Shown piece after piece: positions 1,214 to 26,526 of a stretch of DNA of 64,000 bases. The DNA lies in contig CM074804.1 of the NCBI GenBank assembly GCA_037447605.1, forward strand, positions 2,976,001-3,040,000. The letters are read 5' to 3'. Each line of letters begins with the position of its first letter. Positions within the stretch are counted from its first letter, which is position 1. The translations under genes were made by a program, and so were the position numbers. This DNA is from Zygnema circumcarinatum SAG 698-1b. Its lineage: Eukaryota > Plantae > Zygnematophyceae. The notes under the pieces are model-generated. The model saw nothing but the letters and a program-made list of their open reading frames with translations, made no database searches and was not told the origin of the DNA.

Positions 1214-1510
1214 GGGTTCACAAAGCAAATCAATGGCTTGACTGCAGAAGAACCCTGAGTCTGGTCCTGCAGGAGTAGTTATGCTTGAGGGGCAAGAGAA
1301 GGTCTTCATGAGGAAAGACCCTTCTTCTTGAGTAATGGTGTCTTTTGCATTTACAGAAATTTGTGGCCTTAAAGGCGTCCTACTTTGATAAAGCTCATGC
1401 ATTATAGAAGTGGTCTTTGATCAGACGAAATTATGTGGATTAGCATCATAAGTTCGGGAACCGTGAAGTACCTTACGACACATAATTATCTCACTAATTA
1501 CTCCTTGACC

Positions 1511-1628
1511 TATTTTTTACTCTCCACTATGGGGCTCTATACACACGGTAGTTGTCCCTATACCGCCGCTATTTTTTACTCCCCACTATGGGGCTCTGTA
1601 GACACGGTAGTTGTCCCTATATCGCCGT
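1511..1628. repeat. Two-copy 59-bp tandem duplication
   Basis: TATTTTTTACTCTCCACTATGGGGCTCTATACACACGGTAGTTGTCCCTATACCGCCGC at 1511-1569, followed by a near-identical unit at 1570-1628. Confidence 0.9.
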
Positions 1629-2219
1629 TATGTCAATAATGATCAAACACTTTTTAAGTTAAGATTGCCATTTCTTCGTTGCGACTCGATATCTTGTCAA
1701 ATACTATTTGTGGTCCTTTCAAACACTCATCCTCTACCTTCATTTTCATTTCGGCTCCATCGCCTCCCGCTCAAGTGGAGATAGAGGAGTCCCCTTGCCG
1801 GACCACAAGCCTCACTCTCCAAGCCAATGAACTACACACGTTGCCTTGACATGCCCCATGTCCCCAATGGCAAGCTTGAGTTAGGATCAGAGCACATGTG
1901 TCGTATCCTCGCACTGTCCCAAAGGCATGAACCCTAGTTTGAACCTCGGTCATGAGATTCCTCTTCAGCAACCGACAAGGTCAGCGAGAATGCGCATTCT
2001 CACCTTCACAAAACAAAGGGCGACATATCGCCGACCTTCGCGGCTGCTTTTGGTGCCGTGTTGATGACTCTAGATTCCCGCCTATAGGCTTAGGTCCTCT
2101 GTGACCGATTCCTCATGGTTCCCCGTGTTGCCTTCGTCCATGCACACTTCATAGCCTCGCCCCCAAAATGAGATCCATGCCATTTCCGTACTCCTTTTTA
2201 GCTCGGGGAGTTGCTTCAA

Positions 2220-2444
2220 TAGGGCGGGTCAGACTTAACACATGGCCAAACCAATTTAGTAAGCTTGTCCGGCGAATTAAGTATTGGCTAGGTACGCATT
2301 TCGTTACGGCTGGGTTCGACGGAGCCGCAGATCCCGATTCGGAATTCGTAAGACACAAAACACAAAACTTTAACTTTTAGTATACAGTACTAAATTCACG
2401 AATTTAGTACGCTACGGACTAAGTCTGACCCCCCCCCCCCCCTA
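2220..2444. mobile_element. MITE-like element, family A (TIR core GGG-N3-GTCAGACTT)
   Basis: Termini TAGGGCGGGTCAGACTTA ... TAAGTCTGAC(C)nTA. Interior clearly homologous to 44662-44865. Internal perfect 11-bp hairpin at 2387-2410. TSD ambiguous (TA or AAT). Confidence 0.75.
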
Positions 2445-2710
2445 ATACCATCGACCCGTAGACCCAGGACCGTCCGTACAATGATACCATCAGGAAAGAC
2501 ACGTCAGTACCTTAACAGGAACAGTAACTGGAACGGTAGCTGCGATGTGTCAAGGCATATAACATTACGTCATGTCATGTCACGCCACGCGTCACTCGGG
2601 GAGTCGCGGGCGCGCCAAGGCCGCGACGCGGCTCCGCGCGGGCGTGGGGGCGGGGCCGCCTCTATGAGGGCGCGGGGCCGCCGGCGTGGCAGGAGGGAGG
2701 GAGGGCAGCC

Positions 2711-3076
2711 ATGGCGGGTGGCAGCACCAGGCGCCCGGTCGTCTGCGTAACCGGCGCATCGGGTGACGCCGCTGGGAAAATTGCTGCAGATGCTGCTATT
2801 GCTTCAATACATGCATGCTTCGTTCTCGCTTCAATCGATGCGTGTTTAAAATGGCTGAGAGTTGACGGAGCTGCATGTTTGACTGTGCAGGATACGTTGG
2901 ATCGTGGGTGGTAAAGCAGCTCCTTGAGAGGGGCTACACTGTTCGGGGCACTGTGCGGGATGCGGATAATGTAGAAAGGACAGCATGGATCAGAAAGCTT
3001 GTGGGTCATGTTTCTTACATTCACAATATTGGAGCTGTTTCATTTCGACACATATGAGCTATGGTGTTGCACATAA

Positions 3077-3125
<49 letters not shown>

Positions 3126-6002
3126 TTTTTTTAAAGCATGCATAATTCCTTCACATATGCGCCTCTATGTGTTGTGCCATGCAGGCGGAGGGTACGCCTG
3201 GTACTTTAGAGCTTGTTTCTGCAAATTTGATGGAAAAAGGGAGCTTTGACAAACCGGTAGCAGGCTGCGACTATGTCTGCCACGTGGCAACGGCTGTGCA
3301 ATTGAAAGTCAAAGATTCACAAAAGGAGCTAGTGGACCCGGCGGTGGAGGGCACAAGAAATGTGTTTTCGTCAATCTTGAAAGCAAAAGGTGTCAAGTAA
3401 GTCTTGCTCTGCGCTTGCATAAAAGACTAAAAGAATAAATCAGATACTGAAGATTGAACCCGTGAAGTCACGTAGCACTTTTCTGCTGCTCAATTCCTCA
3501 TGAAAGCTGTGCTGGGAATCATGATCAATCATGATTATGACACGATATTAGTAGCAGTGATGAATCCCTGATTGGAGAATCTTAACGGTAGATACTAATC
3601 CTATACCTTCTCTTGACATCGCAGGCGGGTGGTCATGACTTCCAGCGTGACAGCATTAGGTCAAGAGGATCAGGTTAAGGGCCGCCCTTATAACGAGTCG
3701 GACTGGAATGTGAAAGCGACCATTGCAGATGCCTACCCATTGGGAAAGACTCTTGCAGAGAAGCTTGCATGGAAGACGTATGAAGATCAATCAGATCCTG
3801 AACACCGGTTTGAGCTAGTGACCATCGTCCCAAGTTTTATATTCGGTCCCATCCAAGACAAGCAGCACGCCAGGTCAAGCCCTTCAGTAAGCAGCTCTCT
3901 CCCGTGTTGCTTTCTTTAACCGGCCAGGAAGTGACGGGAATGTTCCTAGAAAAGAAGCGAATGAGAATATCGATACGGAAGTCTTCAGTTTGGATCTGGA
4001 AGCATGTCATCGAGCTGTCTAAGCTGTCTCCGTTTTGTGGACATGCTCCAGTTATATGCCGGCTGTTGTCCAACCGCTACATACATGAAACTAGCGATGA
4101 GTCCAGTTACTCCATCCAACTTCGCTATTTTGACGATTCAAGAACTGAGCTGATTCCTTTATGTTTGCTCCTTCCTCCGTTTCTATGCCACAGGTCATTG
4201 AACAACTGCTGGATGGCACAATGTACCTCGCTCCTAATATTTACTTAAATTGTGTTGATGTGCGGGAGGTGGCGGCAAGCCACATTGCAGCTCTTGAGAA
4301 CACTGAGGCCAAGGGTCGCTACATAGTCAGCTCTCCAGGAGCGTACCATGTCATGGAGATTGGAGGTGTGGGGGAAAAGGAGCCAATTCAGACCCTACAT
4401 GAGGCAGAGAAAAAAGGGGGAAGGACGAGAGTGGGCAAGGGCGACAGGGGGAGGGGAACGGGGAACGAGGGGGGCGAGGGGGAGGAGAGGGGGGGAAGGG
4501 TGGAAGGGGGGGAGGGGAGGGAGAACGAGGGGGAGAGAGCGAAGGAAAGGTGGAAGAGGGAGAGGGGGGAGGGTGGGGCTGGGGGGGCAGTGGGAGAAGG
4601 GGAAAGGAGGAAGGGAGGGGCAGGGGAAGATTGCTAGGGTGAGGTGGGGGTAAGGAAGAGTGGAGAGGAGGGAGGGAGGACGTTGGAGGGAGGGGAAGTG
4701 GCCGAGGAAAGGGTAAGGTTAGAGAGGGATTGGAGGGGGAGGAAGGGAGGGCGCTGGAGGGGAGGGGAGAGGGACGGGGGGAAGCGACGAGAGAGTGTGA
4801 CGGGGAAAGGGGGGAACGTGGAGAGGGTGAGTGGGAGAGGGGAAGGGCTGAGCGTTGGGAGAGGAAGGGAGTGGGGAAAGGCAAGGGGGAACGGGGGAAG
4901 AGGAAGGGAGTGGGGGAAGGAGATAGGGGGGAAGTGGGAAGGAGGAGATTGAGGGAGGTGGAGTGGGAGGAGGAGAGTGGAGAAGGGAAAATCCAGTTTG
5001 CACTATTTTTTGAGGCAGTGGGCGAAGGGGGCTGGGAAGGGGGGAACGGGGGAAAGGGGGAAAGGGGGTTTGGGGGAGGGGGGGAGGAGGAGGGGAATTA
5101 GAGGAGGGTATGGGGAGAGGGGAGGAGTGGGGGGGAAGGGGGGGAAGGGAAGTGGGGAAGTGGAGAAGAGGGAAGGGGAAGGGAGGAGGGGAGGGGTAGG
5201 ATGTGTGGAGGGGAAGGGAAGAAGGGGAGAGAAAGGAGGGGAAGGAGAGGGGAATGGGGAGGAAAAAGGGGGAAATGTGGGAAGGGGGAGAGCGGGGGGG
5301 AAGGGGGAGGGGGGAGGTGAGGATTGGGAGGGATAGGTGGAAGGGGAGGGAAAGAGGCGGGCGGGGGGGTGGGGGGGGGTGAGGGCGAGCGGGTGTTGGG
5401 GGGGGGGGAATGGGGAGCGGGAGAGAGCGAGGGAGAGGTGGAGGAGGGGGGGATCGGCGGCATATGGGAAGGAGGGAAGGAGTCAGGAAGGGAAATGGGG
5501 TGCGTGATTGGGGAGAGGAGGGGCAGGGGGAGAAGGGGGAGGGTGGGCGATGGAGGGGGGGGGGGGGTGGGAACTGGCGATAGGGAGAGGGAGGGGGAGA
5601 TGGGAGGGGGAGGGCAAGCGGAAGTGGGATGGGAATTGAGATAAAGAGGGAGAGAGTGCGGTAGGGAGGGAGGGAGGGAGGGAGTTATCTTCTGCCTATA
5701 AGCAATTTACGAGGTCTTTTGTTCTCTTGACTTGATCTTTTGTCGCAGACTTTTTGAAGGATGACTACGGCAAGGCAAAGCTTCCTGTTGCCAAGGCTCC
5801 CAACTTTCTGCTGTATTTGATAGCAATGCTTGGGCATCCTCAGCTGACGATTGGGAATTTGAACCGCCACTTTCTTCAGCCGCCAAAGGAGATCGACGGT
5901 TCAAGGGTCGAGAGGGAGCTCGGCATTCACTACAGAGATTTGAAGCAATCGGCGAACGACACTGCAAAGTCCATTATGGAATTTGGAATCGTCAAACTTT
6001 AG
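2711..6002 (+). CDS. CCR/DFR-like NAD(P)-dependent reductase, tandem copy 2 (~353 aa)
   Basis: Exons 2711-2762, 2891-3000, 3185-3396, 3625-3886, 4194-4365, 5749-6002 splice in frame. Rossmann motif [31 protein letters not shown], TSS, YxxxK (AYPLGK). Confidence 0.92.
4401..5684. repeat. ~1.3-kb G/A-rich low-complexity polypurine tract inside the last intron of reductase copy 2
   Basis: Almost entirely GG/GA runs on the + strand, ending in (GGAG)n. The paralogous introns in copies 1 and 3 are 123 and 145 nt. Confidence 0.95.
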
Positions 6003-6506
6003 GATTTCGAGAAGGAATGACTTGGCTGCAGTGGAACCCTGAGTCTGATCCTATAAGAGAGATTATGCTTCAATCGATGGATAATGGAGGTGGGGTTCTT
6101 GATGAAGGAGTCAAACCCTTCTTCTGGGTGAGGGTTTCCTGTACAGTACAGAAAGTTGTAGCCTTAAAAGGTCGTCCTACTCTGATAAAGTTCATTCCAC
6201 ATGTAAATAGTTCTTAGAGCAGAAAAAATGATTGGGATTAGCATCATAAGTCTGGAAACCCTAAAGTATCTTATGGCCCACTCTTCCCTTTATTGCTCAC
6301 CGATTACTCGTTATCCAACTATTTGGTTCCCCTACTATGTGGACCCAACGTCCCGCCAAATACTCTTGTGATACTTGCAATTCTGATTACTGAATATCAT
6401 GAGTGAAGACACCGCACTGGTGGCAGTACCTCCCTTTCTTTCCATGTTCCCACTCTCCTCCATTCCCTTTTGCATTTTTTTTTCCTCCATCTTCTCTCAC
6501 TTAAAG

Positions 6507-14517: not shown

Positions 14518-14853
14518 CAAATTACGGCCAACCGCGTCCCGTCAAGTCTACGTGGCGCGATCTGCGCCGTCCGTAGCCGCTGCGGGCGATGCCATCCGCC
14601 AATCGCCGCGCAGGGACCACCCACACGTGCAAGCATGTCTGTCGCTTTGTGTGACGTGGCTCAAAACCTTCCAAGGAACAATATCCAGACAAGATTCGGA
14701 GCTGTTAAGGTCCGCCGCCTCCCTACCTCCCTCCAGTCCTCCCTCCCCCCCTCCATAGCGCTCGTGGGCGCCCTCCCGCAAGTGTCCCCCTCTCCCTCTG
14801 TCAATCTCTCTCTCTCGCGCGCTCCCTCCCTCCCTTCCTCCGCCCTCGCAGAG

Positions 14854-17800
14854 ATGACGGCCATGGCGGCCGCTCTGCTCCTCCTGCTCGCTCTTTCCGC
14901 ACACGTGGCAGCCGCGGCGAGTCCCTGCGCCGCGCTCAGCTCAACGCTGAGCGGCCAATCGCTGCCCACCGCCAAGGAGACCCGCGCGTGCCTCGCCACC
15001 ATTCCGTACAACAAGGCGCGCTCGGACGCCATCGTCGACACTGTGGCGAAGACCTTCGCGCTGTGGCCGTACCTCGAGATCGCCGTAAAGTCACCCACGC
15101 CGGAGCTGCCCTCCAAAGTTGACATTATCGCGGGGCTGAAGAAGATCAAGGCGACCAAATACGAGAGCGACTACGCGTTCAACAAGGCGGTGCGCGACCT
15201 CACCCAGAAGCCCCACGACGGGCACACGCAGTACTTCCCGGCCTGCTACGGCCTGCTCGTCGGGCTGCACGCCCTGCCGCTGGTGGCGTACACGGAGAAC
15301 AACAAGACCGTTGTGAAGGTGGCTGATGTTACAGGTACGAGACTCAAATTTTTGCTGCAATTTCTTGTATAATTCTAGAAGAACAGGTTCAATGTGTGAC
15401 TGCTAGGTCCAATATGCGCTAGATGCAACAGGTGACTGCTGGATTCAATTTGTGACTTTTCCCAGCGATCTCCATTCTCCTGTGCAGGGGGTGGTCTGTT
15501 TGGGTTTGTGGGCGATGAGACGCTCAGAATCGCGGGAGTCGATCGGAACTTGTACTTGGGAGCGGCCGTGTCCGCCATCAACAACGTCTCCGCCTTGGAT
15601 TACCTTTCGAATTTGGGAAAGAAGATTGGAATCTACAGAGACAACGGAGCCAACTTCAATGCTCTTTTTGTGCGTCCGAGCAGCTCTGGCGCTTACATTG
15701 GAGATTTCGCGTTGCGGTACGGCGGCGTGGAGGAGGACTCCGTCACGTTCACGCTCACACGGTGCGTTTTTTTGCGGTGTTCGCTTGTGACCGTTGAAGC
15801 AGGCGTTTAGGCTTGCGCTGTTATCCAGCTCTGTTTTTCGTGTTGGAGAAATGATGTCATTCGTTGGTAACATGTGAGGGAACGCCTGCACTCGCATGAC
15901 AGGGTAGGAAAATCAAAGAAGGAGACGGTTACAGTTCCGTGGTTGATTTACAGCCTCTTAGCATCTCGTTCATTCACAACGGGGGCTCAATTCTTTGAAT
16001 ATTTTTGTCAAGCCGGAACAACTCGCAAAGCAAGCATGAAAAAGGCGGCATTTCTTAAGAGGGAGCTCCCTGTCAAGCCTTTGCTCATTGAGGGAGTGAG
16101 TTTGGAGAACACTCGTGTTGCCAAGGCTGCCGGGAAACCCACTCAATTGGTTTATGGGGATGTAGAGGTGAGCGAACTGTCCATCTGTCTCATGAAAGCA
16201 AATGTTTGATCAAAGGAGTTAGAGTTCTCAAGAGCTCTTACTCACCAAGTTACAAGATCTAGAGCTAGGAATACACACCCGACCTTGTTTGCTGGGAAGT
16301 GAGAAATGTTCGGTTAATCGTAGAATCGATTTCAATTAGGGCTGAACAAGCTCCAATCTAAATTCTTTTGCAAAAAACGGAAAACATGACCTTTCGTGTA
16401 GATTTTCCTCCTTTCGCATTCACAAGAGGAGCATGTATAGTTCAAGGAATTGAAGGGCATGAATTGGACGGATCAGCACAGGACGATGTAATGTCTGTGG
16501 GTCTGTAATGGGTCTGTGTGTGGGTCTGTCTGTCTGTCTGTAATAACCATCGTCTGTGGTTTGGGCTTCACTTCCAGACTTGGCTCCTGGCGGATGGGAA
16601 AACTGGAGTCTTCCTTGTCCCGAGCTTTGACGCAGAGCCATCTTCTTGGACTGCCGCACTCGGAGACGGCGTTCTTGCCTTAAAGTACGAGCGTCTATCC
16701 TCTCCCTGTGGCAAACATGCAAACAATGATATCACCAGGAGAGTACAGGGAAATGCATGCCCCTGGGAGGGAAGACCAAGGAGGCCAATAGCATCTCGTT
16801 TCTTCTTGAAAGTCGACTTACCATACTGATTATGTTTGCGTCGAATTGCAATTCTTTTTACAAATGCTTATTCTTGCAGCATGCGACAAGTGTTCTTTTC
16901 CATTGGGACGTTATGCAACTCACCAGTTGCCTGCTCTCGATCAATATGCCTTGAATTTTCTTTCTCATTCAACTCCGTTCATCTCGAGTCTTCGAATCAT
17001 TGCCTCTCTCAAAATTTTGAAAGTCTTTCTTCTTAGCAGGCCCACTTTCTTGTCTTAACATATTGATGGTGGTGCACTGCCATCAAAGGACTGCATCTTT
17101 CTCGTCCCATGTAAAGAGCATCTTCGCCCATTGAGGTCCGATTCACCAAAACATCCAAAAGCGTGGTTTCTGTGATGCAGGAAATTAGGTATCAAGCGCG
17201 TCATAATTGATTTCCAGGACAACGGCGGCGGTTATAATATTCTTGAAGACAGATTCGTGGAGACATTCTTCCCGTCTCTTAAGAATGAAGTCTATGACAC
17301 CCGGCTCCGAGCTCCCAGCCTCGCCCAGGAACTTGTGAAGCTTGTAGACAAGAGTAAAAACACAGGTTCTCTCTATTATTGGAGTAACTATTCGAACTCA
17401 ACAAATAAGCCGTTCACATCAATTTCTGGCTTTTTCTTCCCAGTCGTCACAACAACGTTTAACCGCCGCGAAGGAAACTACTCAAGTCTTGTTCGACTCT
17501 ATGAGCCCTATTCTTTTGGACCACTTCCTAGCAAAACAGCACCATTCAAAGCAAATAACATCCTTATTCTCACCAATGGTGCATGCTTCTCGGCTTGTGG
17601 AGATACGGCATCTAGACTGGAGGTATGTTTTTCATTCCACTGCCTTCCCATGAACTTGCGAGTGTTGCCGGACACGCATGTGCAGTGCATCGCCTGTAGC
17701 ATTCAGATGGTAGAATGGCTCACTCCGTCTCCTAACCTTCGAGTGCTGCTTCCAATGGGAGGATAATGGCGCGTGCTTGAAGTAAATATCGCACCAAGTC

Positions 17801-18324
17801 TTGAGGATATCCCATTGCTATCTCTTTGTTCCTTTTCTCCGTACGTAGTCCATCGAGTGTGTAGAATCTTAATTACGTGAATATAGGTGAACAGTTGTTA
17901 GGCTGCACGAGTGATAGCGAGGAAACTCAATGCATGCTCGCATGCGCGGACATATCTACGCCCATAAATCATGGATCTTTGCATGTATGTGCAGGAGCTG
18001 GCTAATGTGCGAACTATCGCTATTGGGGGCTTCCAAGGAAAAGCAATGGCCCATGGCGACGGGGTTGTTGGTAATGCCTATTCCTTGTCGAGCCTTCTCC
18101 AATATGATATACCTACCGCCAGTTCTCAAAAGCCGAAGGGTGCACCAGCGCCGCTCCCAATAAACGGGGATCTTTATTTCCCTATCTTATCGGCATATAT
18201 GAAAAAGAACTCCTCTGTACCTGGAGACTACGTATTCCGACCGGCAAAGTATCGACTCCAGTTTTCCGCTTCAACTGTTCTTGATAAGGTAGCGCAGTGG
18301 GAGGCAGCTGCCAAATTTTTTTGA
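14854..18324 (+). CDS. Secreted S41 (tail-specific, fungal/CPAF-type) serine peptidase, copy A (~632 aa)
   Basis: Exons 14854-15334, 15488-15761, 15903-16167, 16578-16684, 17181-17622, 17995-18324 splice in phase. Signal peptide MTAMAAALLLLLALSAHVAAA. Motifs C..IPYN, HDGH, IIDFQDNGGG, ILILTNGACFSACG, VRTIAIGG, RPAKYRLQF...W. Confidence 0.85.
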
Positions 18325-19997
18325 TGACATAAGAAGCACGTCTTCGGCCTTGATTTTTCTTTCAGCAAGGGTTATGACGCGAAGGGCCGTAAACGGGATG
18401 AAGGCGAGGCTTACTTTCTCGCCCTCCGGCTGTTTTGTGTAGCGTACATTATGTTTCATATTATGATGTTGACCCTGGCATTTGAATGGGAAAGATTTAT
18501 CTTTAAGTTCGTTGTCTCTGGTCTTGTTTGTTCTAATTATCTCTTAAATGGCTTACCATCTGTTATAACAGAGGTATTGCGTGTGACATGTCAGCAGCTT
18601 AAACTGGAGTACTTGAAAAAGGTTCGGAATTTCGTTTGGAGCATGTCACAACCTTAACCACAATCAACATTCGCAAAATGTGACTCTTTGGCTCCGCCTC
18701 GAACCCGCGACCGCACAAAGGAAAAAGCGAAGGCCCAAACGGCGCCGCGTCGTGTAGGCGTCACGGCACGGCCCGCTTCGCGACAGCTCGAATTGAGGGC
18801 CGCGCTCCACTTGCAGTTCGCTTTATTTTTTTTTAATTTCAACATTCGCCAACGATGGCTCGCCACGTGGGTGTAAAATAGCCAAAAGTGGGGACGTGGC
18901 CTGCAACATTGGATCATTTCTAAAAAATAAAAATAAAATTAAAAATGAACGCGCATTTTTCAAGAAACCTGTCCGAAGCTTAGAAGTTGAGTTGCAAACT
19001 TGCCCCCTGCCGTGGCCTCCCGTGCCCGCTCCCAGCTCCCGTCTCTCTCCTCCCTCCCCCTTCGCCCCTTCACCGACTTGACACGTCGAGCGCTGGTCAC
19101 CTGAATCGCCATATCTGAGTTATGTATAACCGTGTTCACTCAGTTTCAAAAAATCCTTGTTATTTTAATCCGTGCTCTAAGCTTGTTGACCCAAATTGTA
19201 CCCAGCGACCAGGAGCAGCACAAAGTAGGAAGTCACCCCGAGGCATGCGTAGTGGAAATCACGACACCTAAACGCTTTGCACTTTTGGTCGGTTGTGATG
19301 CTCTTGGAGGTTCCTTGTCGGCAAGCTTCTCGCTCAATTGAGTCTTTGGATGAGTAAACTACATGTTGTGATTGCCAAATGCAAAAGTGTTCTGATTGAT
19401 TGGTAAAAAAAATCCAATCTTTAAGAGTTGAAGAGTTTGCACCAATTTCTAAAGCCGTGTTGTTACACCAAGTAGAGTTCATATGCGTATGATCACATCG
19501 CTATTGTGAGTGCAAATGCAATTTCATGCCACTTTTTTAATCAAAAAAATGCTGCTTTAGGGCTTGCATGGTATTTAAGGTTAAATCACTTCAACTAATC
19601 TCAGATTCTCCCATAAATAATCTATTTACGATATTTATGGGATATTCCCTATTTGAGGAGGCCTGTCCACGTCATGCGTGTCACGATGACGTAAGCTTTT
19701 CGAAGACGACAGCGATCTAGCGTCGTTTGGCGGCTCCGAAGGAACGAAAATCCAAACTGCCAACTGCCAACTGTCCAAAGACCCGAACTGCCAATGAGGA
19801 GCTGCCACGGAGGAATCTCGATGACGTCAGCCCGCCGGAAACACAAGGAGTGGAGAGGATGGTCCTGGTCCCGTCGCCGCCTCTGCGCGGTCCCTCACTC
19901 CCTCCCTCCCTCCGCGGCGCGCCTCCCTCTCGCCCTCCCGCCCTCTCCTCCTCCCTCCCTCTCAGCGTCAGCCCTCTGACCCGTGCGTGTGGCGGCC

Positions 19998-22900
19998 ATG
20001 GCGGCTGTGCTGGCCTCCATGCTCGCCCTCCTCTACCTCTCGGTCCACGTGGCAGCCGCAGCGAGTCCCTGCGTCATAGTGAGCGACAAGCTGAGCGGAG
20101 GCCGCCTCCCTAGCGCCAAGGAGACGTACGCGTGCTTCAGGACCATTCCGTACAACAGGACGCGCGCGGACGCCATCGTCGACACTGTGGCGAAGACCTT
20201 CGCGCTGTGGCCGTACCTCGACATCGCCGTAAAGTCACCCACGCCGGAGCTGCCCTCCAAAGTTGACATTATCGCGGGGCTGAAGAAGATCAAGGCGACC
20301 AAGTACGAGAGCGACTACGCGTTTAACAGGGCGGTCTATGAGCTCATCGCGAGGGCCCATGACGGGCACGCGGGTTACTTGCCGGACTGCTATTCCCAAA
20401 TCACCATCATGGGGTTCCCCGTATTCCTGTACAACGAGAAGAGCAAGCCCATCGTGAGGGTGTCTAGTTTGGGTGAGTTGCTTTTTACTCAGTCCTTTCT
20501 CATTTCTTCGGTTTCTTGGTGTGTTGCATTGGAGGTAAGAGAAGTAGTGCCCACGACCACGTTTGTTTTGTGCAGTTGGGAGCTTGCTCTCAAAGGTGGG
20601 AAACGAGACGCTGGACGCCACGGGAATCGACCGAAATTTGTATTCTGAAGCGGTCGTATCTGCAGTCGATGGAGTCCCCATCATGGATTTCCTCACAAAT
20701 CTCGCTAAGTCGACGGGATACTACAAGGAACTCGGAGCCAGCTTTAATTCACTTTTTTCAAGGCCCTACAAGTATTCGAATACTTACTTCATTGGAGGGT
20801 TCGCCTATCGCTATTTCGATTTTCAAAAGCCTACCATTTCACTCACGCTCACAAGGTACCGCCACTTTTGCAAAGTGCGCACTGACTAGTTCGTCACATG
20901 CATCACAGCATTCCTCATTCGAAGTGCTTGTTTTTGCCTATTGCTGCAAGTTGCCTTGAGCGTCCGAACTGTCACATCGTATAAAGTCTTCATTAGTGGG
21001 AGTCATGAGTGTTCATGAACTATTTCCGAGGTAATAGAAAGAAACGTGTATGTTTTGGGTTTTCAATGGATTCTGTGACTCCCACCTTCTAGTTCAAGGT
21101 CGAGCCTGGAACTGTTTTAGAGATTGCATCCCCCTCGATCTGTAGGAGGGTCGGTTCTGCCCTACTGTGCGCAGGAAGCAGAAAATCGATTCCTATCGGA
21201 CTCCTTCTGCTCCTTCAGGGGTACTCAATAGGACCCCCTCAGGTTCACATCAAATCTTTACAAAAGCCCCGTTACGTGCATGCCAGGGCCCTCTAAGAGG
21301 AAGCTCAATTCCTCCTAACAGCTGTAGTCCACGAATGTGCTTGTCGTTCCTCGAACTTGTCTTGTTCATTACTTCGTGTCATATATGAATGGCAGTGTCT
21401 CATGGGCTTTTGCTTGTAAGCCTGTCTGTTGTAAGTCGTTCGCTCCTCGAAAGGTGAAGGGCTGACCCCTGCACACAGGAGCGAGTTGCGGGGGCCCTTC
21501 ACAGCTCGCCGGACATGCCTTAACGTTTCTGTTCACACGAGGGCACTGTATGTACCTACTCCCTGTGCCGTAAATGACTATGTTTTGTGCTCGTGCATGA
21601 CAGAGAAGGACAGACAGAGAGCGAGACAATCACAGTTCCGTTCTTCACCAGATTTGGTTCGTACAGTTCCCCATTCTCAACCGGAGAGGAGTATTTTGAG
21701 CAGTATTGCAAAGCAGACACGTTGACACTCACCAAAAGTAAGGGCAACAAGGCGGCTTTTCTTCCACAAATGGTGGAGCCTATCGAGGCAACTTTTTCAC
21801 CTATTTCAGAAAGACGTGTTGCTAAGTTGAGTGGGACACCCACACAGTTAGTGAGCGACCTCATCGATGTAAGTACACAATTACCCGGTGAGCAGACCTA
21901 GTGAAGTCAAGCATTTTTCTTAAAACAATTTTCATGGAATCCTTTCAAGGAGATGGGAAGTGTTTCGGACACTGCACTTCTAAGCAACAGTTTGATAGAA
22001 AGTCATAGCTTCAAAGTTGCAAATGGCCTCCTCCCGATGGGTGTGGAGGCGAGGGGAGGGAAGACATGGAGGGCGGGAAGGGAGGGAGACAAAATGTGAC
22101 CCGTGGCTTGTTTGGGCTTTCGACTCCAGACATGGCTTCTGCCCGACAACAAGACTGGAGTCATGATTGTGCCTGACTTCGACGTCTCTCCCAACATTGA
22201 GTGGATGGCCGCTGCACGAGCGGGTGTGGACGCTTTGAAGTGAGGCCCTTGCTCTTCACTTAATCGAATGTTAGTTCATGTGCATTGATTTTCGTTGATC
22301 CCAGCTGTGCTACACTTCTGACTCTATGGGTTTCAATTGCTCTTGTTCCTTTGTTGTTTTAGAATGCAAAGCCTGCTAGTGTAGGCATCAGTTCTGCCGG
22401 AAGGTGATAACGTCGCAGGCTTGATCTATAAGTTTCCTAAGCAGATCTTCGGCATTATAAATTTCTTGTAATTGCTTGAATGTCTTCACTTGTTTCAGGA
22501 AACTGGGAATCAAGCGGATCATAATTGACCTTCAAGACTGCCCGGGTGGTGACGCTGTTTTGAACGACCAGCTCGTGTATCTCTTCTTTCCGTTTACTCG
22601 GGACAACACTTATGATGCTGAATTTCGGGCAAGCCCCCTTGCTCAGGAGCTTGTAAACGTTGTAGATAAGAAAAACCTGACTACATCATTCTTCCATTGG
22701 TCGAACTTTCGAAGTACTAAAAATAAGTTATTCACATCCAAATCTGGTTTCTTCTTCCCGGTCGTCACCAAAACTTTCAGCGGTCGGAAGGGACCGTATT
22801 CAAGCCTTGTGAGATATCCCAACATAAAATTTCCGGGTACACCATCTCGAACAGCTCCTCCCCCTTTCAAAGCAAAGGACATCCTTATCCTCACTAATGG

Positions 22901-23478
22901 TGCCTGCTACTCGGCTTGTGGAGACTTCACGTACCGATTGGAGGTATGACATCATGCCTCCTATCCACGGTCTACATGCATGTACGGTCCATATCTTCAG
23001 CACGTCTGTGAAAGCAAGTCTTTGCATGTTTGGAAGAGAAGCATCCATGCATCATGCATTCACGCATGCATGCGTGTGCATATACTCCCATCCTCAACCT
23101 CCGCTCTCTGCCCCTCCCTGTTGCGCTGTCCTTTTCGTGCAGGAGCTGGCCAAAGTCCGGACGGTGGCTCTGGGAGGCTTTGCGGGGAGGGCCATGGCCT
23201 ATGGCGGCGGCGTGGTGGGCGAGTCGAGCGCGCTGTCGTACTTCCTCGCGGAGGACCTTCCGCCGCGCGGCGGCAGCGCGGCCCTGCGGCGGCTCGCGCC
23301 GAGGCCGCTGCCCGTCCGCGGGGACGTGTACTTCACCAGCCTGCAGGCGTATACCAAGTCCAACACGTCCGTCCCGGCGGAGTTCGTGTTCCGGCCGGCG
23401 AAGTACCGCCTCCAGTTCACCGCCGCGACCGTTCTGGACAAGGCGGCGCAGTGGGAGGCCGTCACGAAGCTCTTTTAG
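19998..23478 (+). CDS. Secreted S41 (fungal/CPAF-type) serine peptidase, copy B (~636 aa)
   Basis: Exons 19998-20472, 20576-20855, 21604-21868, 22130-22239, 22499-22943, 23143-23478, with the same intron positions and phases as copy A. Signal peptide present. Motifs HDGHAGY, IIDLQDCPGG, TNGACYSACG. Confidence 0.85.
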
Positions 23479-23861: not shown

Positions 23862-26526
23862 TCAAGGAGCCCCACCCTGCAAGTAGGCCAATAGGTTCTC
23901 ATGCATCGGGTCGCTACAAAAGTCAGCCAAGTTTTCTATGGGGCCCTTTCCAGTCACCACAGCCTGCCCGGAAAATCCCAGCCATGCCACCATGGCTAGG
24001 CGCGCATGCTTGATCTCCTTCACCTGCACACGTCCCCATGGCACCATAGGATGGATGTTTTGATAGAGAGACAGAGAGCAGAGAGGAGACGGAGAGGGAG
24101 GAGAGGGGAGGGGGGAGNNNNNNNNNNGGAGGGGGGAGGGGGGAGGAGAGGCAAAGGAGGGAGGAGAGGGTGAGGGAGAGGGTGAGAGAGAGAGCGAGAG
24201 AGGATCATCCAAATGGAACAATTCTCAAGTGATATATTGCAACGAGCATTCATTTGTTCAGTAGAAGAAAGTCTGTACAGTAACAAGGGTTCACTGTAGG
24301 TTCTCGCATGCTTAAGGTTTCAAGCTGCGTGAATCAACGGCAGGAATAAGCCTTTCCTTAGTCTGCTCACATCTCCACTCTCTCAAGCATAGCTCCAAAA
24401 AGCAGACCTTGAGATCTTCAAAGGCAGCCGCCTCTTTACTGAGGTCCAAGGGATCAAAGGGCCCCCCCGGGTAGTTGATGTCCCCAGGGAGGTAAATCCC
24501 GAGAGGTTGCAGAGCTCCAATCCCAACATATCGCGCATATTCAGGGCCCAACTGCGCGATACAAAACAAGGTAAAAAAACAAAAGAATGCACGTTCTTGT
24601 CTTCACGTAGCAAGGGAGAGTTTCTTAGTGCCTCAACAAAGGGAAAAAGTAAAGAAAAAAATTTGCAAGCGCTGGCATGAGCCAATAAAAGCGAGCCATG
24701 TGCTTACCATGAGAAGAAACTGAGCTATGGCGATAACAACCACCCCTTGCCCTCCTGCAATGTGGAGTCCGGGCACTCCCAAATAGTCCAAAGTGTCCCC
24801 CTGCCAGAGGCTCCTATAGAAGAAGTCAGCTCCTGTTTCAATACAGACGCATTCGTCGCTATAGAAAAAAAATTGCATCCCGCTTGCTCACCGGCGGGGC
24901 CTCCCATTCTTGCAAGAGCTGCTAACAATGCAGCAGTTCAGGAAAAGTGATTTTTTAACAAATTTCTAAGTACAGTGTATCCCCTCTGGATAAACCCCTC
25001 TAACTTTTAAAATCTTCCTAGAACCACTTTCAACCACCCATGGACTTGCGGAGGTTTCCTGCCCAAAACAGGACAGCTATGGCCCTTAACCGTAATTTTC
25101 TGCTCCCCCTGTAACTCAATCACCTCCATAGCTTCACAGCTTTTTGTTTCCACCGAGCCCATGAAGTGGTTAGACTGCAATCTTGGGCCAATACGGTTCT
25201 GCCACGTGGCTCACCTGCAGCTTAGCATAGCCCACTTTCCACCAGACCGGCTCGGCAAAGTCCACACCTCCAAAGCGAATGAGAAGCTCTGGAACAACTG
25301 CCCCTAGGGCGCCTAGCATCGCCCATCTTCCATGGAGGATTTCAAAGCTGCACGATCCACAAATTCCTGCCAATTATTGCCTCTCTACACTCTTCAAATC
25401 AGTAAATTTTTTACTTTTCTACTTCTTCTTTGTCTTTAAGGTTCAAAAATGAAGTGAAGACGATTGAGTAGAAACAACGAGATGTCCAGTGGTTATCCAT
25501 TTCACACGCTTCTGATCAAGACCTTGAAGCGAGCTTCTGTTGCAAGTGAGAAACGGAATGCATTCAAGGTTTACTTGAAGTTTTTGTCGAAAGTGCTCTG
25601 CTCCTTCCCAAGCTCAAGCAAGTCATATCCATAGTCTCCAGCGACCTCTCCAGCGAGATATGAAGGATAGGAGTACGGCAGAGGGCCCAGCCATTTAGGA
25701 CGATCAGGTCCATACCACAGACTGCATCAAAATAAGTCAAGAAAAAAATGGGGTGGGAACGGGTGGACGAGCTTTAAAGAAAGAGTAAAGTAGTGCGCAT
25801 TGGACACCAGGTATATTGATCTTGATCTCAATCCTTCCAAACATGTTTACTAATTGAAGCTTTTCACAACTTTTAAAGTCACGTTCAAGTTCTTGCTCTC
25901 AAACCTCTCTTCCCGCGCTTTCCGCTGAGAGGCTCGGGCTGCAGCGGCCTGCTGCTCGGCCTCCGCCTTCCTCTGTTCCAGCTGTCGCTGTAACGCTTCT
26001 CCGACGGAACTGTTGGCGATGGCCTTAACGGCAATGAATGGAAATGCAGAGAACACCAATACCCCTGCCAACTGCATGCCGCCAAGTGTCGCTTCTCGAT
26101 ATGTAATTTGAATACCTTTTTCAAGTTCGCAGGCAGAAGGTTTATGTTATTTACTTACTATTCCCCTTGCGTTAGCCAATGGGTTTTCAGCATTTCAGGG
26201 GTTTGAGGGTTTTTAAATGATTTAAATTTTTAGGAGCGGTGAAATCGTTTGAGCTACTTAGAGATTCAACAAAAAGCTTCTCCTTATGAGAAGAACGAGA
26301 GAACGAAGGGAATTTAAGAAAAATGAGAATGGGAGTGACACGAGTTCGCGCACAAGAGAAGAGGAAGAGAGTGATAGGGAGGGAGAGAGGGGGAGAGGAG
26401 TACGACCTCCTGCCATTCTGCTACAGTAGGCTGTGTTCTTCTCCTCTCTCTGCTTCGCTCCTTTGGAGATGCCACATTGAGTGAAGGCAGAGGCCGGGCT
26501 AGAAAGGAGCTCTGCATCGTTCGCAT
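23862..26526 (-). CDS. LHCB7: Light-harvesting chlorophyll a/b-binding protein LHCB7 (~321 aa)
   Basis: Exons 26526-26407, 26071-25905, 25721-25575, 25347-25215, 24800-24708, 24551-24408, 24023-23862. LHCB7-specific N-terminal segment [24 protein letters not shown], plus [37 protein letters not shown] and [13 protein letters not shown]. Confidence 0.93.

Follow-up and report, generated by a model that had tools for sequence, protein, structure and literature searches.

CPAF (CT858; PDB 3dor, 3dja, 3dpm) of Chlamydia trachomatis is a bacterial effector that acts in the host cell. It is built from an N-terminal domain ending in a histidine, a PDZ-like insert, a linker and an S41 core that bears the serine. 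A water-mediated triad of His105, Ser499 and Glu558 has been reported for this protease (PMC8787135), and its PDZ-like domain comprises residues 106-212, straight after His105 (PMC4734761). Lactacystin is a ligand of CPAF (PDB 3dpm). Proteins with an S41 core are also found in fungi, where a secreted S41 family includes AvrStb9 from Zymoseptoria tritici as well as UstP from the ustiloxin cluster. The classical S41A enzymes, such as the plastid CtpA/D1 protease and Prc/CtpB, have the same S41 core fold and the D..N.GG motif. To our knowledge, plant protease catalogues contain S41 peptidases only as the plastid CtpA type. Here we describe a pair of genes in a stretch of 64,000 nucleotides, hereafter the window, of the zygnematophycean alga Zygnema circumcarinatum SAG 698-1b (contig CM074804.1, positions 2,976,001 to 3,040,000). 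Both genes lie in the same orientation on the forward strand, at 14854-18324 (gene 1) and 19998-23478 (gene 2), and consist of six exons each. In our view the locus likely arose when, long ago, a gene encoding a CPAF-like S41 peptidase of about 630 amino acids was duplicated in tandem, the product being a putative secretory protein that would work with a Ser-His pair. While CPAF is a bacterial effector, the window genes are nuclear genes of an alga.

The order of parts in the two proteins is the same as in CPAF. A hydrophobic N-terminus is followed by a helical N-terminal domain ending at the histidine of HDGH, a PDZ-like insert, a poorly conserved linker, the S41 core with the motif IID..D..GG and the serine of GAC[F/Y]SAC, and finally a C-terminal portion in which an acidic residue is conserved. 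The motifs on which the original prediction of a secreted fungal/CPAF-type S41 peptidase was built (IPYN, VDIIAGL, HDGH, IID..D..GG, GAC[F/Y]SAC, VRT.A.GG and RPAKYRL) were all found. All searches of the window proteins were made exon by exon and not on the joined protein. Exon 2 of both genes matches the Pfam model PF23658 (PDZ_CPAF_rel) above its cut-off of 27 bits (Table 1). HMMER was used to compare the exon-5 pair with 1.84 billion representatives, and 139 matches had an E-value of 0.001 or better. The best of them reaches only 80 bits at about 34% identity, and thus the window's own proteins are absent from the searched library. The top matches align in order with every exon of both genes at about 24-38% identity, and the full-length relatives bear PF23658 together with PF03572 (Peptidase_S41). 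The match to this family is far beyond chance. Against a profile of 76 near-full-length relatives the six exon pieces of each gene are collinear, occupying profile positions 3-169, 178-254, 261-304, 345-377, 383-528 and 531-637. The exons of gene 1 score 141.6, 41.0, 17.8, 9.0, 144.1 and 77.4 bits, and the summed exon scores of the two genes are about 430 and 410 bits, with reversed controls below 0 bits. Word-based protein searches with the 41-row family alignment, a Mesotaenium protein and an 8-row algal alignment recovered, apart from the queries themselves, hardly more than a few basidiomycete proteins; because the family is too divergent for shared 5-mers, these blanks are uninformative about its distribution.

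The fold was modelled for P0001, the closest full-length relative (about 24-34% identical), which stems from intron-free RNA contigs of one run series, using the 41-row family alignment. The model has a mean predicted local distance difference test score (pLDDT) of 86.7 and a predicted template modelling score (pTM) of 0.87. The comparison with CPAF that the original prediction had proposed was made on this relative, and the top Foldseek match in the PDB is mature CPAF (3dor_A, E-value 2.2e-13, template modelling score by target 0.60), which also ties for the best Z score. Structures of CtpA, Prc and the D1 protease fit clearly worse. The identity to CPAF in the structural alignment is about 12-15%, and outside the N.GG region there is no significant sequence match. 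Classical S41A structures are matched by the family profile at E-values of 2e-06 to 4e-03. Searches of the PDB with the sequences of exon 5 and of P0001 gave no meaningful match. The P0001 model contains a single disordered loop, residues 314-347, between the PDZ domain and the S41 core. This loop corresponds to the second half of exon 3, which is the least conserved part of the window proteins: the paralogues are 38% identical there, and within exon 3 the match to the family profile is confined to the first 47-60 residues. The variable linker lies at the topological place of the autoinhibitory segment of CPAF.

Conservation in the family is highest at the D-G-H of HDGH, at D..N.GG, at the G.C.S.C that holds the serine, at a GG pair and at some prolines. 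The column of the putative catalytic histidine is His in 62 of 66 ungapped rows, that of the putative nucleophile is Ser in 72 of 76 rows, and the cysteines flanking the serine are 99-100% conserved. This Cys pair and a second one at the N-terminus are features of the family. A candidate for a third catalytic residue lies in the motif P-x-[DE]-[FY], where 49 of 76 rows have Asp or Glu and 24 have Gln; the Gln is found in a Dikarya clade. Lys reaches half of the family rows in no column downstream of the serine, and therefore a Ser/Lys dyad of the CtpA type, in which the Lys follows the Ser by about 25 residues, is absent. The FQGK/FAGR site carries Lys in gene 1 and Arg in gene 2. The assignment to the secreted fungal/CPAF type thus holds on the match to PF23658, the domains of the relatives, the fold of one relative and the lack of a Ser/Lys dyad. 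The claimed difference from the plastid CtpA type is borne out as well by the missing dyad and by CtpA-type structures not being the best structural match. By the tested criteria, a place of the window genes in the CPAF-like branch of S41, and not in the CtpA-type branch, is supported.

Both gene models were derived from the three forward reading frames and a search for exon-end peptides. GT..AG borders are present in all 10 introns, and the codon positions of the introns are identical between the two genes, with phases 1,2,0,2,0 in each. The two intact six-exon genes of the original prediction are confirmed, and its boundaries coincide exactly with the ATG of gene 1 and the stop codon of gene 2. 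Five public RNA runs from the same organism contain 64-78% of the sampled words of the region, and contigs from three of them (X1-X3, two studies) were aligned to window positions 14750-20700. Spliced contigs of X1, X2 and X3 match all five predicted junctions of gene 1 exactly. Gene 1 is therefore transcribed and spliced as modelled at its five introns. For gene 2, spliced contigs contain the junction of intron 1 (20472|20576, GT..AG), which shows transcription at least across the first intron; introns 2-5 are based on sequence and on conservation with gene 1. Contig depth, a crude measure, is about 1300-6500 in exon bins of gene 1 and 0-76 in its intron bins; in gene 2 it is about 20-460, below gene 1 in the same runs.

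Further observations were made on these transcripts. Contigs extend past the stop codon of gene 1, from 18309 to about 19242-19510, where they are roughly one tenth as deep as in the exons. This points to a long 3' untranslated region (UTR) or to read-through. Contig joints from 14841 to 19891/19892 were set aside, as their short side has only 18-20 letters and is CT-rich. In exon 6 of gene 1 (18165-18224) a cluster of 11 differences separates the RNA contigs of X1 from the window sequence, part of which is also seen in those of X2 and X3, and single differences occur at 15102, 17463 and 17470 in all three runs. These could be strain or allele variation, or a close paralogue merged by the assembler.

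Between the two paralogues, protein identity per exon is 38-66%, the synonymous divergence (dS) in exons 2-6 ranges from 1.2 to saturated, and the ratio of nonsynonymous to synonymous divergence (dN/dS) is about 0.2-0.4 where dS is measurable. High dS together with low dN/dS points to an old duplication with both copies under purifying selection. A different picture is seen in exon 1, where codons 46-110 (approximately) are 97-100% identical at the nucleotide level, third codon positions included. This tract of about 200 bp looks like the product of recent gene conversion.

In both proteins the N-terminus is the only strongly hydrophobic segment (mean Kyte-Doolittle value over 19 residues 2.16 in gene 1 and 2.02 in gene 2). 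A second such segment was found in neither of them, the next best mean being at most 1.32, and neither has a hydrophobic C-terminus or a KDEL/HDEL motif. The sequence HVAAAA-SPC after the leader is conserved in both genes, and the family consensus likewise has DPC after the leader. Cys positions are conserved across the family. The original prediction had spoken of signal peptides and many N-glycosylation sequons. The hydrophobic N-terminus agrees with this, while the N-X-S/T sequons, of which gene 1 has 6 and gene 2 has 5, are several and not many. These features fit soluble proteins of the secretory pathway, and from them we infer that the proteins may be exported out of the cell.

Several points weigh against a secretory Ser-His peptidase of the CPAF type. 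A signal peptide stands for entry into the secretory pathway, not for export. Exon 5 alone scores only 14.7 and 17.7 bits with Peptidase_S41 (PF03572), below the cut-off of 24. This domain is split by an intron and runs on into exon 6, so that exon 5 holds only a part of it, and among ten full-length relatives scanned the cut-off was passed by six (P0001, P0002, P0005 and P0018 among them) and failed by four (P0003, P0004, P0009 and P0014). The fold belongs to P0001, at about 24-34% identity, and not to a window protein. Gene 2 has a cysteine at the near-invariant asparagine of the N.GG motif. Profiles of the N- and C-terminal parts matched no CPAF chain in the PDB, and the whole-family profile reaches CPAF only at an E-value of 0.07. 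Since the terminal parts lack a sequence match to CPAF, the equivalence of the HDGH histidine with His105 is putative and drawn from topology, and that of the acidic residue with Glu558 is likewise putative.

Table 1. Features of the S41 locus, in window coordinates; catalytic residues, domains and signal peptides are predictions
Feature	Position	Strand	Remarks
Gene 1	14854..18324	+	CPAF-type S41 peptidase of 632 amino acids; ATG 14854, stop 18322-18324
Gene 1, coding exons	14854-15334, 15488-15761, 15903-16167, 16578-16684, 17181-17622, 17995-18324 (with stop)	+	Forward frames, exon-end peptides, GT..AG sites
Gene 1, predicted signal peptide	14854..14919	+	About 22 residues; hydrophobic core, HVAAAA, then SPC; cleavage site inferred
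Gene 1, putative gene-conversion tract in exon 1	14990..15184	+	Partner in gene 2 about 20134-20328; 97-100% nucleotide identity
Gene 1, putative catalytic His	15223..15225	+	Second H of HDGH, just ahead of the PDZ-like insert; conserved column
Gene 1, exon 2 portion of the CPAF-like PDZ domain	15562..15756	+	PF23658, 29.8 bits
Gene 1, putative nucleophile Ser	17590..17592	+	In GACFSAC (17578-17598); conserved column
Gene 1, candidate third catalytic residue	18226..18228	+	Asp in VPGDYVF; column Asp/Glu in 49 and Gln in 24 of 76 rows
Spacer between the paralogues	18325..19997	.	1.67 kb; 3' UTR or read-through of gene 1, promoter/5' UTR of gene 2
Gene 2	19998..23478	+	Paralogue of 636 amino acids; first ATG 19998, stop 23476-23478
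Gene 2, coding exons	19998-20472, 20576-20855, 21604-21868, 22130-22239, 22499-22943, 23143-23478 (with stop)	+	Same basis as gene 1
Gene 2, predicted signal peptide	19998..20063	+	Kyte-Doolittle 2.02 at residue 1; alignment with the paralogue
Gene 2, putative catalytic His	20367..20369	+	Same conserved column
Gene 2, exon 2 portion of the CPAF-like PDZ domain	20641..20850	+	PF23658, 31.9 bits
Gene 2, putative nucleophile Ser	22911..22913	+	In GACYSAC (22899-22919); conserved column
Gene 2, candidate third catalytic residue	23380..23382	+	Glu in VPAEFVF; same column as in gene 1

The organism of origin was labelled for 30 of the 139 matches, all from the search made with exon 5 only. Four of these are Zygnematophyceae: EP00270_P010237 from Netrium digitus, ME000578S08307 and ME000304S05005 from Mesotaenium endlicherianum, and CAI6004413.1 from Closterium sp. 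NIES-64. The others are fungi (Mortierellomycota, Basidiobolus, a chytrid, basidiomycetes and a lichen ascomycete) and the amoebozoan Stygamoeba. Neither a land plant nor a chlorophyte is among the 30 labelled matches, and so a clade spanning both groups, which the original prediction had named as evidence to the contrary, was not seen there. The nearest large clusters of the ESM Atlas come from fungi, Evosea, Preaxostyla or bacteria, never from plants. The four zygnematophycean homologues have the same architecture as the window genes, fall into the same clade and are distant paralogues or orthologues of them, with about 25-37% identity in local matches to the window exons (for Closterium in the multiple alignment only). 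The fungal family around AvrStb9, a protein of unproven enzymatic activity, is 20-30% identical, and the algal sequences form a clade of their own. The clade of the window genes is part of a eukaryotic family known chiefly from fungi. Pfam models for it already exist, and databases already contain the homologues, though as unnamed or hypothetical proteins. Literature on a CPAF-like S41 family in streptophyte algae was searched for and none was found.

A full-length tree of 76 matches, unrooted and without outgroup, contains an algal clade of eight rows with a support of 97 in the Shimodaira-Hasegawa-like approximate likelihood ratio test (SH-aLRT). It is made up of the four Zygnematophyceae and four unlabelled rows, falls into three deep sub-lineages and has a Dikarya group on one side and early-diverging fungi together with Amoebozoa on the other. 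Separate trees were made of the exon-1, exon-5 and exon-6 regions, with the window exons as rows of their own, and gene 1 and gene 2 are sisters in every one of them (98-99). The trees of exon 1 (support 80) and exon 5 (support 92) place the window pair in a clade with all algal rows, to which between one and five rows from basidiomycetes also belong; in that of exon 6 the window pair, the algal rows and fungal clades emerge from one unresolved node. With all 139 matches included, the algal clade comprises 15 database rows (support 88). One fragment, P0112, is prokaryotic-looking and probably a chance match.

Introns add to this picture. When the Closterium protein (CAI6004413.1, P0044) was mapped onto its own genomic locus, a phase-0 intron was found exactly at the site of window intron 3 (before V/T-[YW]-LLAD), and its two phase-2 introns are at most one to two residues away from window introns 2 and 4, in stretches of variable length. 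A rough count puts the probability of such a triple coincidence of intron place and phase at about 1 in 10,000. The Mortierella member, the one fungal gene compared, differs from the algae in this respect, as both of its introns are located elsewhere. The common clade of Netrium, Mesotaenium, Closterium and the window genes shows vertical descent within these algae. The deposited Closterium model itself (L008:1966-9751) has 14 exons over 7.8 kb and no N-terminal His region; it looks like a fusion of an NDUS4-domain gene with an S41 gene.

For the origin of the algal genes the original prediction had left two ways, ancient horizontal transfer or patchy retention. This pair of options fits the trees, but the trees do not choose between them. 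In one reading, to which we give a little less than even odds, the family is an old eukaryotic one that descended vertically, was lost in most lineages, probably including the land plants, and was kept in Zygnematophyceae, fungi, Amoebozoa and some others. The distribution over several eukaryotic supergroups, the monophyly of the algal clade and the deep divergence, with even the best match at 80 bits, speak for such a history. It would, however, need many independent losses, the amoebozoan rows stand among early-fungal rows so that the gene tree departs from the species tree, and nothing was found in other green lineages, where the search was made from one exon only.

The other way, an ancient transfer from a fungus or another heterotroph into streptophyte algae, followed by intron gain and duplication, is possible and we entertain it only tentatively. 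It would account for the fact that labelled relatives outside the algal clade are all fungi or Amoebozoa, that the large Atlas clusters are never from plants, that land plants and chlorophytes are missing among the labelled matches and that the Mortierella introns lie elsewhere. However, the algal clade is not nested in any sampled fungal clade of the unrooted tree, in which the labels are those of 30 of 139 matches. Three deep algal sub-lineages with introns in common across them imply that any transfer would be very old, and a recent transfer, like contamination, is excluded by these shared introns and by the flanking nuclear genes, one for a light-harvesting complex (LHC) protein among them.

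A third reading concerns not the origin but the activity, namely that the window genes encode catalytically dead binding proteins. Such cases probably exist within the family: the fungal rows P0014 (Mortierella), P0059 and P0074 lack Ser and His together and, judged by these residues, are probably pseudo-proteases, while a fourth row without Ser, P0101, is gapped at the His column. The joint loss in three rows also fits both residues acting together. In gene 2, the cysteine in the N.GG motif could be taken in the same direction. Nevertheless, both window genes have kept the histidine, the serine with its flanking cysteines and the acidic residue, and both are under purifying selection, and we consider dead proteins improbable here. 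DNA of a fungal or other contaminant, or a plastid processing protease of the CtpA type, which the similarity to fungal proteins and the common family S41 might suggest, is rejected as hardly credible, since ordinary nuclear genes flank the locus, spliced RNA is found in runs of the same organism, introns are shared with Closterium, the PDZ domain is of the CPAF type, a conserved Lys after the serine is missing and CtpA-type structures fit clearly worse. The host-type introns, which the original prediction had already set against contamination, have gained weight by the RNA-confirmed splicing and by the three introns in common with Closterium.

Under the reading that we prefer, a duplicated secretory peptidase of the CPAF type, the proteins would be made as follows. 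The N-terminal signal peptide would be cleaved upon entry into the endoplasmic reticulum, where N-glycosylation and disulfide bonding may take place. As no retention, membrane or glycosylphosphatidylinositol (GPI) signal is visible, the proteins might leave for the wall or mucilage, or for a lytic compartment. Peptide bonds would be cut by the Ser-His pair, aided by the Asp or Glu, in analogy to the His105-Ser499-Glu558 triad of CPAF, and the PDZ-like domain might select or gate substrates. The position of the exon 3 linker, at the place of the CPAF autoinhibitory segment, makes activation by self-cleavage possible.

The surroundings of the locus showed some further features. An LHC-like gene lies on the reverse strand at 23862-24700, about 400 bp downstream of gene 2 and convergent with it. 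It is broken by an assembly gap (N run 24118-24127), and five further runs of ten Ns occur in the window. CT-rich stretches precede the start codons of both S41 genes and resemble a low-complexity block at window positions 4000-5500. This block is purine-rich/CT-rich, with a GC content of 0.59 and a GC skew of 0.62, and holds long spurious open reading frames on both strands.

The present evidence amounts to an annotation-level finding. Within this frame, the algal lineage nearest to land plants has a second branch of S41, that of the CPAF/fungal type, which is expressed and has been duplicated. A further-reaching view would be that the genes represent an ancestral multi-copy family of secretory proteases of the algae closest to land plants, which was lost at the origin of land plants, and that gene 1 is a major extracellular protease. 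We regard this as rather unlikely on current grounds. If it were true, possible tasks of gene 1, which its contig depth ranks with the more strongly transcribed genes, would be the remodelling of wall or mucilage proteins, the processing of signals during conjugation or nitrogen scavenging. If the donor was a fungus-like organism instead, the locus would record one of the older transfers from fungi to streptophytes. If the proteins are secreted and active, they would be candidates for the extracellular biology of these algae, including mucilage, wall turnover and conjugation, and the family would mark a gene loss, or an ancient transfer, at about the time when land plants arose. The algal genes could also give an experimentally easy eukaryotic model of a protease type that has so far been studied as a chlamydial virulence factor or as a fungal avirulence protein of unproven activity.

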